A stretch of 64,000 nucleotides of DNA, from NCBI GenBank assembly GCA_037447605.1, contig CM074811.1, positions 1,116,001 to 1,180,000 on the forward strand, read 5' to 3'. This DNA comes from Zygnema circumcarinatum SAG 698-1b. Lineage: Eukaryota; Plantae; Zygnematophyceae. The notes beneath the pieces are model-generated. The model did no database searches. It had not been told where the DNA came from and was given only the letters and a program-made list of their open reading frames with translations. A program made the position numbers and the translations under genes. Of this stretch, positions 49,293 to 57,487 are shown in pieces. Position 1 is the first letter of the stretch; every line of letters starts with the position of its first letter.

Positions 49293-51507
49293 GGGAGGAG
49301 GGGCTCAAGGAGAACGGCTCGGAGGGGCTCAAGGAGAACGGCTCGGAGGGGCTCAAGGAGAACGGCTCGGAGGGGCTCAAGGAGAACGGCTCGGAGGGGC
49401 TCAAGGAGAACGGCTCGGAGGGGCTCAAGGAGAACGCCTCGAGGGGCTCAAGGAGGAAACGGCTTCGGAGGGGCTCAAGGAGAAACGGCTTCGGAGGGGC
49501 TCAAGGAGAACGCTCCTGAGGGGCTCAAGGAGAAACGGCTTCGGAGGGGCTCAAGGAGAACGCTCGAGGGGCTCAAGGAGAAGCGGCTTCCGGAGGGGCT
49601 CAAGGAGAACGCCTCGAGGGGCTCAAGGAGAACGCCTCGAGGGGCTCAAGGAGAACGCTCCTGAGGGGCTCAAGGAGAAACGGCTTCGGAGGGGCTCAAG
49701 GAGAGCGGCTTCGGAGGGGCTCAAGGAGAGCGGCTTCGGAGGGGCTCAAGGAGAACGCTCCTGAGGGGCTCAAGGAGAGCGGCTTCGGAGGGGCTCAAGG
49801 AGAACGGCTCGGAGGGGCTCAAGGAGAACGGCTCGGAGGGGCTCAAGGAGAACGACGGCTCGGAGGGGCTCAAGGAGAACGGCTCGGAGGGGCTCAAGGA
49901 GAACGCTCGGAGGGGCTCAAGGAGAACGGCTCGGAGGGGCTCGGAGGGGCTCAAGGAGAACGGCTCGGAGGGGCTCAAGGAGAACGGCTCGGAGGGGCTC
50001 AAGGAGAACGGCTCGGAGGGGCTCAAGGAGAACGCTCTGAGGCTCGGAGGGGCTCAAGGAGAGCGGCTTCGGAGGGCTCAGGAGAAGCGGCTTCGGAGGG
50101 GCTCAAGGAGAGCGGCTTCGGAGGGGCTCAAGGAGAAGCGGCTTCCGGAGGGGCTCAAGGAGAGCGGCTTCGGAGGGCTCAGGAGAAACGGCTTCGGAGG
50201 GGCTCAAGGAGAGCGGCTTCGGAGGGGCTCAAGGAGAACGGCTCGGAGGGGCTCAAGGAGAACGGCTCGGAGGGGCTCAAGGAGAACGGCTCGGAGGGGC
50301 TCAAGGAGAACGCTCCTGAGGGGCTCAAGGAGAGCGGCTTCGGAGGGCTCAAGGAGAAACGGCTTCGGAGGGGCTCAAGGAGAACGGCTCGGAGGGGCTA
50401 AAGGAGAACGGCTCGGAGGGGCTCAAGGAGAACGGCTCGGAGGGGCTCAAGGAGAACGGCTCGGAGGGGCTCAAGGAGAACGGCTCGGAGGGGCTCAAGG
50501 AGAACGGCTCGGAGGGGCTCAAGGAGAACGGCTCGGAGGGGCTCAAGGAGAACGGCTCGGAGGGGCTCAAGGAGAACGGCTCGGAGGGGCTCAAGGAGAA
50601 CGGCTCGGAGGGGCTCAGGAGGGGCTCAAGGAGAACGGCTCGGAGGGGCTCAAGGAGAACGGCTCGGAGGGGCTCAAGGAGAACGGCTCGGAGGGGCTCA
50701 AGGAGGACGGCTCGGTGGGGCTCAAGGAGAACGGCTCGGAGGGGCTCAAGGAGAACGGCTCGGAGGGGCTCAAGGAGAACGGCTCGGAGGGGCTCAAGGA
50801 GAACGGCTCGGAGGGGCTCAAGGAGAACGGCTCGGAGGGGCTCAAGGAGAACGGCTCGGAGGGGCTCAAGGAGAACGGCTCGGAGGGGCTCAAGGAGAAC
50901 GGCTCGGAGGGGCTCAAGGAGAACGGCTCGGAGGGGCTCAAGGAGAACGGCTCGGAGGGGCTCAAGGAGAACGGCTCGGAGGGGCTCAAGGAGAACGGCT
51001 CGGAGGGGCTCAAGGAGAACGGCTTCGGACGGCTCGGAGGGGCTCAAGGAGAACGGCTCGGAGGGGCTCAAGGAGAACGGCTCGGAGGGGCTCAAGGAGA
51101 ACGGCTCGGAGGGGCTCAAGGAGAACGGCTCGGAAGGGCACACGGATAACCGCACGTAACCCCTAAAGAACAACTGCGCCGACTGCATCAAGGAGAACGG
51201 CTCGGAGGGGCTGGGGGAGACGGCTCGGAGGGGCTCAAGGAGAACGGCTCGGAGGGGCTCAATGAGAACGGCTCGGAGGGGCTCAAAGAGAACGGCTCGG
51301 AGGGGCTCAAGGAGAACGGCTCGGAGGGGCTCAAGGAGAGCGGCTTCGGAGGGGCTCAAGGAGGAAACGGCTTCCGGAGGGAGGCTCAGGAGAAGCGGCT
51401 TCCGGAGGGGCTCAAGGAGAACGGCTCGGAGGGGCTCAAGGAGAACGGCTCGGAGGGGCTCAAGGAGAACGGCTCGGAGGGGCTCAAGGAGAACGGCTCG
51501 GAGGGGG
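49293..51507. repeat. ~2.2-kb minisatellite, 24-bp unit GGAGGGGCTCAAGGAGAACGGCTC (about 90 units, with indel variants)
   Basis: Direct reading. It produces the LGGAQGER, GLKENGSE and SPSEPFSL ORF artefacts. A unique insert lies at about 51137-51188. Confidence 0.97.
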
Positions 51508-54500
51508 ACGTCGAGGAGGGGGTCGACGGCTGGGAGGAGGCTTACGTGGAGGGGGCCTTTTCAAAGGGGGCCGAGGACGGGGAGGAGGTGGACGCGGAGG
51601 AGGGGATGGTGAAGCTGCAGAAATGCAGGGCAGTGTGAGAGTTCCCGATCATAATTAAAGGCGAACTACCTTCTTCCATAGCTTCCGTATTCTAATCGAA
51701 ACATAGCTTCCGTATTCTAATCGAAACACGTCCTTATAAACGTTCTTGGAGGATGCAGTACGAAATGAAAATCCATTCAAACCGCATTTAGTGTGCTCTT
51801 ACAGCAATGACAGTGTAAAAGTCGATAGTAATGCGATAGTTTCCACAACATATGCCACCCTTTACTTTTCCTTTCTTGCGAGTATCTACAAGGAGCAGGT
51901 TGCCACTCACCACACGTGCCGGATGCCAACGCATATCCCTTGTCGCATGTGCACGTGGCCGTGTCGTACCCGCACGTGCCGCGGCCTCCGCACGCTCCCT
52001 CGGGAGAACCGCTCTGGCAAAAGGCCGCGCACTGTTTCTTAGGTCTCTGCTTTTGAGCTGCGCCACATCCTGTGATATCGCGATAAATGCAGTTGTTGGT
52101 AGTACTGAAGGAGCAATAAGGATCCCCATATGTTGTAATGTCGATTGGCCCGGAGAAGTAGTTGTCTTGGATCTTCACTTCATAAATGCCATAGCTCGAA
52201 AGAGTTATGGAGCCAGTAAGCTTGTTGTTGTCCAAGTACCTGATGACATTACGGGTGGCGCGTTAGAGACAAAGCGAGAAAGGGAGAAACATTCCAACAG
52301 AATCCCTTCAAGTCTTCCTTGTGACACAGCCACTGAAAACATTCGCTTGTGCTCTCTGCAAAGTCTTTGACTCCATCTTTACGACCCTACGCAACCTTCA
52401 GCCTTCAAACACTGAACCCCTAAATCTCTAAGCCTTTCCCTACATCCATTCGACCTGCAATCCCATAGCCCCTGAACCCGCTAAACCCCCATGGCATCTA
52501 AACCCTTTAACTCATATGCCCCTAAACCCCTTGAGTTTTAAGACCTAAAACCTTAAAACCCTATACCCTAACCCTAATCCGTAAATCCTTAATCCTAAAA
52601 TCTCGACAACGAAGTCCAATCTCCCGCATGCAAAAGTGCGCGTTATAGTGCGTCAAATAAGCCCACGCCGTGGCAGAAGTGACCAGAAATATGAGATAAA
52701 CTCAAAACTCATGCAAGCGCAAAACAAATGCACTAGTTTGAGAGGTACAAATGCTTGGTCGACAGCAAAAATTCAATCTGCAAATAAAACGTTATCAATG
52801 CAGCGGTGCTTACAGGTACTGCAGTCCGGTGAGTTTAGAGATGAAGCCGGACACTCTCCCCTCCAGTTTGTTGCTGCTCAGGCCCCTACAGACATACATA
52901 ACGACAAAAAGTTTAACGAAAAGGATAAGGCTGGTTTTGGACTGAACAGGAGTAAATCAGGTATTCAACTACACGTTCTATAGTCGAATCCTCAAACGCA
53001 GTCTCACAGAAATGCAGTGCGAGATTAAAATTTACTCGCATATAAACACCAAAAGTGAAAACAACCACGCGCAAAGATATGCCACGCAATCATGGATACA
53101 CAACATCGAAAGTTGCTGCTTGCTGCTTTGATGCAATACGTCAATGCACTTATAATGTCAGAAAAAATGTCATACAAATTCACACAAATTCCCGAGGTCC
53201 CCAATAGAGTTCGGGATGATGCCCCTCAAAATTAGTAAAGCGTCTGCATGTGAATTATTATCCACAGATCTTCATTAAAATCTTCACGAGCTCGGCGGAT
53301 GTTTTGCGGCCAAAAAGAAAAAAAAAAGAAACTCGGTTTAATGATTGCTCAAATTCAAACCGAAGCTCGAAGTTGCCACGTGCCAAACGACCAATGAGCA
53401 GCTTCGCGGCATCTCCTCCTCCATGGAGGGCGGAGGGGGCGGAGGGCTCTGCGCAGCGTTGCATGGCATGGAAGAGGAGATGCCGCCAAGGGCCACGCGC
53501 AGTTGACATGGGGGACGTGACGTGACATGACACGTGTCCTCTCAAGGGCGGAAGGCACCGCTCGCAGGCACCGCCACTAGGAAGTACGAGAGAGGGAACG
53601 GTACGGCGGCGGACGGATCAGAGGAGTGGCGCACGGCAAAATCTGACGCGTATCTGACACTGCGACGCGATTGGTTGGAAGATTCTCGACATGTCAGTGC
53701 GATCTGATACGGGTTGAGGGGATTTCAGCTTCTTTAATACTTACAAGTAGTTCAGATTCGCAAGGTTGCCGATAGAATCCGGGATAGACCCCGTTAGGGA
53801 ATTAGAAGCAAAGGTCCTGCCAAAAATAAAAAAAAGGGCACTGAATAAACATGCTGCCACGACTAGCACTTCTATCACTGGCATTTCTATCTCTTTCATT
53901 TCAGATTTATGGGGAAAAATACTTACAGTGTTTGCAGATTCGCAAGGTTACCGATAGAATCCGGGATAGACCCCGTTAGGGAATTGAAGCCCAAGTCTCT
54001 GCCAAGAATAAAAGAAGGGCACTGAATAAGCATGCTGCCACGAACAGCATTTCTATCACTGGCATTCCTCTGTTTGGCATTTCTATCACTCTTATTTCAG
54101 ATTTATGGGGAAAAATACTTACAATTCCACCAGATTCGCAAGGTTGCCGATAGAATCCGGGATAGCACCCGTTAGGGAATTAGAAAACAGGTATCTGCCA
54201 AAGAAAAAAAAAACAGGCACTGAATAAACATGCTGCCACGACTAGCACTTCTATCACTGGCATTTCTATCTCTTTCATTTCAGATTTATGGGGAAAAGTA
54301 CTTACAGTGTTTGCAGATTCGCAAGGTTGCCGATAGAATCCGGGATAGACCCCGTTAGGGAATTGAAGCCCAATTCTCTGCCAAGAATAAAAGAAGGGCA
54401 CTGAATAAACATGCTGCCACGACCAGCATTTCTATCACTGCATTCCTCTGTTTGGCATTTCTATCACTCTTATTTCAGATTTATGGGGAAAAATACTCAC

Positions 54501-55539
54501 AGTGTTTGCAGATTCGCAAGGTTGCCGATAGAATCCGGGATAGCACCCGTTAGGGAATTGAAGCCCAATTCTCTGCCAAGAATAAAAGAAGGGCAGTGAA
54601 TAAACATGCTGGCACGACTCGCACTTCTATCACTGACATTCCTCTGTTTGGCATTTCTTTCACTTCCATTTCTGATTTATGGGGAAAAATACTTACAAGT
54701 ATTGCAGATTCGAAAGGTTGCCGATAGAATCCGGGATAGATCCCGAGAGGGAATTATAACCCAAGTATCTGCCAAAAATAAAAAAAATAGGCACTAAGTA
54801 AACATGCTGCCTTCTATCACTGACATTCCTCTTTCTGGCATTTCTATCTCTTTCATTTCAGATTTATGGGGAAAAATACTTACAATCTTTGCAGATTCGC
54901 AAGGTTGCCAGTGGCAGGTGAAATGTTTCCTTCAAGTCCGGAGTTAAGTAAAACACTGCAAAAGGCAGGTTAGCAGTGATAGCGTCAGAAGAAGAAAGGG
55001 CCGCGGGCAGTAGGACGGCTCCTGGCGGCCCTTTTTAACCGTTTTCTGAGGAGGCTTCTTCCCGCAGACCCTCCTCGCAGCCTCGACCTGCAGTTCAGCA
55101 GCTATGGAATCCGCGGAGCCCTCAACATCACAAGCGGTGTTCAGTCAGAGTGTGGCTCACATCTCAGTTACGTGCTTGCCGCTTGCGTCGCAGGTGACCC
55201 CGTACCAGTCGCTGCAGAAGCGGTTACTCGCTTTCCAGGAGGAGAGGAGTCCTCCTACGTTGGTGAATGCCGCTTTGACAGCGAGAAGAGCGGTCCCTGC
55301 GCCCAAGCGCGAGCAGATGCAGGATTGGATTGAGGCCGCGGTACGCTTCAAAAAGCACAAACAGAGGCCCCGCCGCGGGCAGGCCGCCTCTCCCCTTCTT
55401 CCATAGAGGGCGGGCGGGCGGGCCGCGGCGGCTCACTGTCTCGCGGGTCGATGGCCTGAGCGGCGGCTTCGCGCGGGGCGGCGGCGGCGGCAAAGAGGAG
55501 GACCGCCGCCGCGAGAGAGAGAGACCGCGCGCGCGCCAT
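51484..55539 (-). CDS. Secreted LRR protein: signal peptide, LRRNT, about 10 plant-type LRRs, Cys-rich EGF-like module and Pro/Arg-rich tail (LRR-extensin-like), about 424 aa as assembled
   Basis: Exons 55539-55437 (MARARSLSLAAAVLLFAAAAAP...), 55296-55161 (LLAVKAAF...LSSWKASNRFCSDWYGVTC), seven 72-nt exons (54955-54884, 54768-54697, 54572-54501, 54377-54306, 54194-54123, 53998-53927, 53816-53745), 52885-52814, 52239-51911 (YLDNNKLTGSI...NNCIY...QRPKKQCAAFC...CGGRGTC...CTCDKGY) and 51614-51484 (SPSPPPRPPPPRPRPPLKRPPP...SRSP*). All splice phases are consistent. Confidence 0.9.
53745..54955 (-). repeat. Tandem array of LRR exon+intron cassettes (period 182-196 bp)
   Basis: Seven 72-nt exons separated by six near-identical introns of 110, 124, 111, 123, 124 and 115 nt, forming two intron subtypes. 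Confidence 0.95.
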
Positions 55540-57195: not shown

Positions 57196-57487
57196 TAGCG
57201 GGGGGGAACTGCGAGGATAGAGGTCTCTCTCTCCTCTGCTCTCTCTCCTCTAGTCTCTCTCCTCTGCTCTCTCTCCTCTGCTCACTCTCTCTCTTGCTCT
57301 CTCTGCTCTCTCTCTCTCTCTGCTCATACCTTTACGGACGTTGCGCTGGTGTGTGAGTATCCCAAAACAGGGGGAATATCCAAAACAGGGGGCGGGATAT
57401 CCCAAAACAGGGGGCGGAATAGCCAAAATGGGAGGGTAAGATTTCAAAAAAAGGGCGCGGGATAACCAAAAGGGGGGCATTGTATAG

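Follow-up and report, generated by a model that had tools for sequence, protein, structure and literature searches.

The subject of this analysis is a gene for a leucine-rich repeat (LRR) protein in the zygnematophycean alga Zygnema circumcarinatum SAG 698-1b, located on the minus strand of a 64,000-nt stretch of contig CM074811.1 (assembly GCA_037447605.1, positions 1,116,001 to 1,180,000). This whole stretch is referred to below as the window, and all coordinates are given within it. The middle of the gene is occupied by an array of short LRR exons that were copied together with the introns between them. A first-pass annotation had described the array as part of an LRR receptor and had proposed for it a recombination- or splicing-based system of receptor diversification. 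The anatomy of the array was largely confirmed, but neither the receptor nor the diversification system was supported by the results presented here.

Anatomy and repeat register of the exon array

Splicing by hand yielded seven LRR exons of exactly 72 nt each between 54955 and 53745, namely, E1 (54884..54955), E2 (54697..54768), E3 (54501..54572), E4 (54306..54377), E5 (54123..54194), E6 (53927..53998), and E7 (53745..53816). They are separated by six homologous GT-AG introns: I1 before E2 (54769-54883, 115 nt), I2 before E3 (54573-54696, 124 nt), I3 before E4 (54378-54500, 123 nt), I4 before E5 (54195-54305, 111 nt), I5 before E6 (53999-54122, 124 nt), and I6 before E7 (53817-53926, 110 nt). 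All six introns are in phase 2 and split a Leu codon between its second and third bases. The donor is GTAAGT in five of them and GTGAGT in the remaining one, and a T-rich tract followed by GGCAG forms the 3' end in every case. The spliced frame is open, and the seven beta-strands listed in the first-pass annotation (LQRLYLGYN, LQYLELGFN, LQTLELGFN, LQTLYLFSN, LVELDLGFN, LQTLTFASN, and LNYLGLSSN) were all found in the spliced translation exactly as given, as were the in-frame 72-nt exons and the uniform intron phase.

According to the exon alignment, E3 and E4 (ELGF..QT) and E6 (DLGF..QT) have standard ends, and E2 (YLGY..QY), E5 (YLFS..VE), and E7 (TFAS..NY) have unique ones. A GGTGCT patch, which encodes GA, is common to E3 and E5, in agreement with the earlier description of the exons as mosaics. 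E1 is a hybrid: it is identical to the array consensus from position 47 to position 72, and its positions 1-46 are unique and unrelated to the array, so that its earlier assignment to the array held for the 3' part of the exon but not for the 5' part. The proposed division of the introns into two subtypes was also correct. Type B comprises I2, I3, and I5, and type A comprises I4 and I6; I1 is A-like but lacks the deletion typical of this class, and the order is thus A' B B A B A. In both type A introns, 15 nt between AATGCCA direct repeats have been lost, and it was this deletion that gave rise to type A from the longer form.

Tandem Repeats Finder (TRF) delimited the tandem block as 53736..54909, with periods of 195 and 379 and 86-87% matches, which corresponds to 6.1 units of ~192 nt and a two-unit higher-order period of 378 nt. 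The latter is the exact length of both I3+E4+I4+E5 and I5+E6+I6+E7. One edge of the block, 54909, coincides with position 47 of E1, and the other is located 9 nt inside intron 7. Since the block starts within E1 and not at a splice site, its register is that expected of unequal crossing-over and not that of an exon-specific mechanism.

Intron 7 (52886..53744, 859 nt) could be aligned with the array introns over its first 9 nt only. It contains a 68-nt element (53176..53243) that retains the flanking AG and GT, is ~70% alignable to the array exons, has a stop in the phase-2 frame, and would shift the frame because of its length if it were included in the transcript; this element reads as a decayed LRR cassette. 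No promoter-like duplicate was found in intron 7, and no part of this intron is repeated elsewhere in the window.

We regard as probable a germline, evolutionarily recent tandem amplification that needed no dedicated recombination or splicing machinery and took place within a single gene, the product of which is probably a secreted LRR protein of the plant type. One LRR per 72-nt phase-2 exon would have been the ancestral state of the family. Through unequal crossing-over, with pairing of the conserved, IGNLANL-encoding 3' thirds of adjacent LRR exons, a unit of ~192 nt made up of exon positions 47-72, the intron, and exon positions 1-46 would have been copied, followed later by a 378-nt double unit; in this way, LRRs would have been added to the solenoid with the frame intact. 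Afterwards, youth plus some sequence exchange would have held the introns and the scaffold core 90-98% alike, and both ends of E2, E5, and E7, i.e., the solvent-exposed xxLxLxx positions, would have become very different due to diversifying selection, to short-patch conversion or the retention of older patches, or to both. Recent amplification via unequal crossover with some sequence exchange had already been suggested in the first-pass annotation, and both the register inside the exon and the tree-incompatible sites described below are in line with it.

The same anatomy could also serve a dedicated receptor-diversification system, in which programmed recombination or conversion from donor cassettes, or regulated exon skipping, would produce many specificities from one locus. 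The cassettes are symmetric (72 nt, phase 2 at both ends), so any subset of them would splice in frame, and, since an intron falls within each beta-strand, a change of neighbor makes a new strand. At the same time, nothing is missing from the germline gene, whose frame is open, the splice sites of the cassettes are equally strong and nearly identical, and the repeat register lies inside the exon. Moreover, the donor cassettes were not found. Searches with blastn, with an LRR regular expression, and with a 21-mer allowing 3 mismatches detected no copy of the array introns or exons elsewhere in the 64-kb window, and no reverse-strand or dispersed cassette was found within these 64 kb by blastn or the LRR expression. 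All six N.L.G.IP..IG.L..L cores of the window are located inside the array, as are all six matches to the 21-nt intron core, which had no match in metagenome contigs. Complementarity between introns was limited to a single inverted repeat between the 3'-terminal 26 nt of intron 2 (54957-54982, upstream of E1) and a stretch of I3 (54432-54457); it is 73% complementary and contains a perfect core of 10 bp, whose initial 9 bp, CAGTGATAG, are present in all six cassette introns. In view of these results, a dedicated system is considered very improbable.

Two further candidates were rejected. Docking/selector pairing of the Dscam type was discarded, since the one 26-nt pair with 73% complementarity is at approximately the chance level for the region. 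An introner or transposon origin of the array introns was discarded as well, because the exon cores were duplicated together with the introns and no copies are present elsewhere in the window. An Rfam scan returned nothing relevant, with one chance match to DicF.

Divergence of exon ends, cores, and introns

To describe the variation among E2-E7 and their introns, the alignment was divided into the exon core (positions 14-63, 50 positions), the exon ends (22 positions), and the introns (98 ungapped positions). The ends contain 18 segregating sites with a nucleotide diversity (pi) of 0.43, the core contains 6 (pi 0.05), and the introns contain 17 (pi 0.08). The diversity of the ends is thus about five times that of the introns, and the excess of segregating sites in the ends is significant in comparison with either of the other two regions (Fisher p 1.5e-8 each). 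The almost invariant core of the first-pass annotation was thereby confirmed, but the introns, described there as nearly identical, differ pairwise by 2.4% (I3/I5) to 11.5%, plus indels. The accompanying claim that the differences sit at the exon ends proved correct for the array as a whole and incorrect for half of its exons: the ends of E3, E4, and E6 show 0-1 differences, so that the residues labelled "variable" are shared by these three out of six array exons, a further point against a dedicated diversification system. The diversity of the ends is confined to E2, E5, and E7, each of which is unusual at both ends, and it is only the joining of two neighboring exons that makes every beta-strand unique.

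The two double units, [I3 E4 I4 E5] and [I5 E6 I6 E7], were also compared. Their parts differ by 2.4% (I3/I5), 2.8% (E4/E6), 4.5% (I4/I6), and 4% (cores of E5/E7), and the two 378-nt units differ at 24 positions in total. Of the 22 end positions, 12 are different between E5 and E7, against the 2.4-4.5% of their flanks, and each variable codon differs between these two exons in 2-3 bases.

These values bear on the possibility that the locus is an artefact or is dead, i.e., that the number of copies stems from a faulty assembly, or that the gene is an unexpressed pseudogene with drifting repeats. The predicted 3' end of the gene, which enters a 24-bp satellite, could be taken as a sign of this. 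However, artefactual copies would be identical, unlike the copies and double units compared above; all 11 predicted exons are open, with canonical splice sites; and drift would not have spared the core and the introns while altering the ends. This explanation is therefore the one to which we assign the smallest probability, and the gene is presumably expressed.

Diversifying selection by point mutation alone was considered as another explanation of the ends. It would require clean duplication, a single genealogy without exchange, and ends evolving 5-15 times faster as new binding residues were favored. The contrast in diversity between ends and introns agrees with it, as does the location of the differences at the five x positions of xxLxLxx. 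The Nei-Gojobori estimates (NG86), in which pS and pN are the proportions of synonymous and nonsynonymous differences, are less favorable. For the five x codons, pS was 0.62 and pN was 0.50, both near saturation; for the two Leu scaffold codons located in the ends, pS was 0.74 and pN was 0.08; and for the core, pS was 0.098 and pN was 0.033. Three synonymous events (~1.7 sites) were counted at the Leu codons of the ends against ~0.4 expected from the tree length of the introns (~0.23 changes/site), an excess for which a Poisson estimate, based on very few sites, gave p ~0.007. This synonymous excess, the 2-3 nucleotide differences in each variable codon of E5/E7, the lack of any acceleration in E3, E4, and E6, and the sites incompatible with a single tree all argue against selection on point mutations as the whole explanation, which we consider unlikely.

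Some of the same observations weigh against recent tandem amplification followed by divergence, the explanation preferred here, at least in its simplest form. The pN/pS ratio is ~0.8 at the variable codons, so the excess of nonsynonymous change at ligand-facing codons that the first-pass annotation had proposed to look for was not shown, and the scaffold Leu codons in the ends have a pS of 0.74 against 0.10 in the core. Since the synonymous sites of the ends have diverged too, dN>dS, the classical mark of positive selection, was not demonstrated. The ends of E3 and E4 are identical, while I2 and I3 differ by 8.9%, which points to strongly heterogeneous rates. Moreover, no single tree accommodates the GGTGCT patch of E3 and E5 or position 4 of the exons, which would fit some sequence exchange but falls short of proof. 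The ends may thus differ in ancestry from their flanks, and neither simple duplication with divergence nor simple homogenization accounts for everything.

End patches of other ancestry than their flanks would fit the synonymous excess at least as well as selected point mutations. Such patches could have come from short-tract conversion, or from homogenization of introns and cores that halted at diverged patches. Patch import would likewise produce divergence at both synonymous and nonsynonymous sites, which is a point in favor of the diversification system judged very improbable above. It is also conceivable that the LRR cassette loci of the genome form one system, in which beta-strand patches beside the introns are exchanged among loci by conversion, with the core and shared introns as homology, or in which cassettes are combined by exon skipping. 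The synonymous excess in the end patches would be compatible with such exchange between loci, although we give this possibility very little weight.

Predicted product and its relatives

Upstream of the array, exon 1 (55437..55539, donor in phase 1), recognized by direct reading and splice contexts, contains the start codon and a hydrophobic N-terminus that, judged by eye, is a probable signal peptide. Exon 2 (55161..55296) encodes a plant-type LRR N-terminal cap, with a match to Pfam LRRNT_2 (PF08263) at E 3e-10 and 40.6 bits (cutoff 20.7). Downstream of intron 7, E8 (52814..52885) is an older, diverged 72-nt phase-2 LRR exon, and E9 (51911..52239, 329 nt) carries the last LRRs, a Cys cap (NC..C), and an epidermal growth factor (EGF)-like Cys module, ending in phase 1 directly after the last Cys. 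The last exon (51484..51614), predicted by direct reading only, would add a 42-aa tail rich in Pro, Arg, and Ser. The spliced translation contains 24-residue repeats of the form LxxLxLxxNxLxGxIPxxLGxLxxL, and the profile of the last LRRs matches the ectodomains of FLS2, GSO1, BRI1, and MIK2.

The tail is predicted to stop at the first TGA encountered in the 24-bp satellite mentioned above, which adjoins the Pro-rich last exon and extends over 49293-51614 (50000-51506 according to TRF) with ~62 copies and 89% matches. The satellite has a G+C content of 0.63 and a strongly positive GC skew. Of its minus-strand frames, one is interrupted by a TGA in each unit and the remaining two give SPSEPFSL and PLRAVLLE, and all three plus-strand frames are open. 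Also in the surroundings of the gene, a (TC)n-like microsatellite and a 22-bp repeat are located upstream (57224-57428), and runs of N, representing assembly gaps or masked stretches, are present downstream at ~41560 and ~47480.

The designation of the product as a receptor could not be maintained. No kinase motif was found in any frame of the whole 64-kb window, although small exons are not fully excludable; no credible transmembrane (TM) stretch was detected in or near the gene, the sole TM-like stretch being ~8 kb away in low-complexity DNA; and no open reading frame suitable for a TM segment or a kinase was found downstream, the predicted product ending in its Pro-rich tail. For these reasons, a secreted LRR-EGF-like protein, and not a receptor kinase, is the best description. 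The product is probably an LRR protein with a signal peptide, LRRNT_2, ~10 LRRs, a Cys cap with the EGF-like module, and a short Pro-rich tail.

Homology, fold, and Pfam searches were performed with single exons, and not the whole spliced protein, as queries. A search with E9 against 1.84 billion representatives returned just 26 weak matches with 32-45% identity, and the proteins of the source genome are therefore apparently not in that collection. The 26 proteins have in common a module NC..C..QR..C.(A)FC..G.CGG.G.C..C.C..GY, in which 11 columns are invariant. Matches of E9 to Pfam EGF_2 and EGF_Teneurin (E ~0.01) were below the threshold. Its AlphaFold2 (AF2) model had a pLDDT of 76, and the Foldseek search of the PDB with this model gave nothing significant (LRX8, E 7.2, was an insignificant fold match), so the EGF assignment rests on the Cys spacing together with the sub-threshold Pfam matches. 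A search of the atlas with E9 returned generic LRR clusters only.

The relatives P0002-P0026 form a streptophyte-algal family with LRRs, a Cys cap, and the EGF-like module, to which the Zygnema gene is connected by the same C-terminal module, at the low identity given above. In P0012, P0026, and P0009, the LRR-cap-EGF-like module is followed by a hydrophobic stretch or TM segment and a protein kinase domain, so kinase-bearing and kinase-less forms of this ectodomain coexist in the family. Other relatives have no hydrophobic stretch and look secreted; among these, P0004 has the same LRR-EGF-Pro-rich order, with the Pro-rich tail at its end. A homologue of the C-terminal module is also present in the Closterium NIES-67/68 genomes, where the gene is intronless. 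This homologue and the LRRNT_2 match bear out the first-pass placement of the gene in a streptophyte alga, and a zygnematophyte setting is supported as well. In P0016, a ~200 aa extension past the EGF-like module appeared lectin-like by eye.

In the gene of P0003 (GCA_947471745.1, CANJKZ010000724.1), the LRRs are located on 72-nt phase-2 exons and the C-terminal module on one long last exon, and no tandem cassette array was seen at this locus. The exon design was thus inherited, and the amplification in Zygnema was local and recent. The P0003 gene (2001-21587) spans 18 kb, with introns of up to ~9.5 kb, and is directly followed by a gene with a legume-lectin domain.

Comparison with known systems and significance

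The Zygnema gene shares with the LRR receptor kinases (LRR-RK) and receptor-like proteins (RLP) of land plants the 24-residue plant-specific LRR consensus, LRRNT_2, and the concentration of variation on xxLxLxx, and it differs from the receptor-like kinases (LRR-RLK) in the lack of a TM helix and a kinase. The ectodomains of ERECTA and SERK also have one LRR per 72-nt exon. Resistance (R) proteins of the Cf-2/Cf-5 type have near-identical alternating LRRs, and Cf-2 is intronless. To our knowledge, the LRR-RK/RLP genes of land plants are not recent tandem arrays of introns plus exons. In the LRR-extensins (LRX), an LRR domain is followed by a Cys-rich hinge and a long extensin domain with Ser-Pro(3-5) repeats; the predicted Zygnema product shows the order LRR, Cys-rich, Pro-rich, but its tail is a prediction of 42 aa that contains few SPPP motifs. 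Assembly of the kind known for the variable lymphocyte receptors (VLR) of the lamprey, where an incomplete germline gene is completed somatically from donor cassettes, has no counterpart here, since the gene is complete and there are no donors in the window.

The closest resemblance in exon design is to the ROCO genes of the brown algae Ectocarpus and Saccharina, in which 72-nt phase-2 exons with a single LRR undergo duplication and shuffling and inactivated exons are left in introns (Zambounis et al. 2012, PMC3341825; Teng et al. 2024, PMC11378527). In these genes, positive selection on the concave face was detected with site models, alternative splicing occurs, and the LRR exons are dispersed, lie on both strands, and move between loci (PMC3341825, PMC11378527). 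The Zygnema array has in common with them one LRR per 72-nt phase-2 exon and the variability of the concave face, and the relic exon at 53176-53243 resembles their inactivated exons. The alternative splicing of ROCO genes of the same exon design (PMC11378527) is an argument for regulated exon skipping at the present locus. At the same time, ROCO proteins are cytoplasmic LRR-ROC-COR GTPases with another LRR consensus, whereas the protein described here is predicted to be secreted and has LRRNT_2 and the EGF-like module; no ROC-COR GTPase domain is present in the predicted protein. The cassettes in Zygnema, in contrast to the dispersed ROCO exons, are strictly tandem and belong to one locus in the 64-kb window.

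A parallel in the mode of growth is found in Tetrahymena, where LRR arrays of 90-bp exons consist of tandem exons of equal length with phase-2 introns, expand clonally by unequal crossing-over, and, when young, keep their nucleotide similarity, introns included (Xiong et al. 2019, PMC6564038). Tandem LRR exons of equal length and phase-2 introns are found in the Zygnema gene too. The ciliate arrays differ in the 90-bp length of the exons, in their spread over thousands of genes genome-wide, in their links to LINE-like elements, and in the lack of the plant-type LRR and of the LRRNT cap (PMC6564038).

The locus is therefore an example of a known way in which binding proteins grow and not a new machine for making diversity; taken by itself, it bears out a principle already established and reveals no new mechanism. 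If exchange between loci or exon skipping did take place, it would represent a fast-evolving extracellular binding repertoire in a streptophyte alga, independent of the brown-algal one. The locus is of value because the growth and diversification of a plant-type LRR binding surface can be followed in it nucleotide by nucleotide, in an alga closely related to the land plants: phase-symmetric exons, each with a single LRR, are duplicated along with their introns, after which the putative ligand-facing codons diverge. It could feed a genome-wide study of the evolution of LRR repertoires before the immune receptors of land plants, and it offers a parallel from the green lineage to the brown-algal and ciliate cases.

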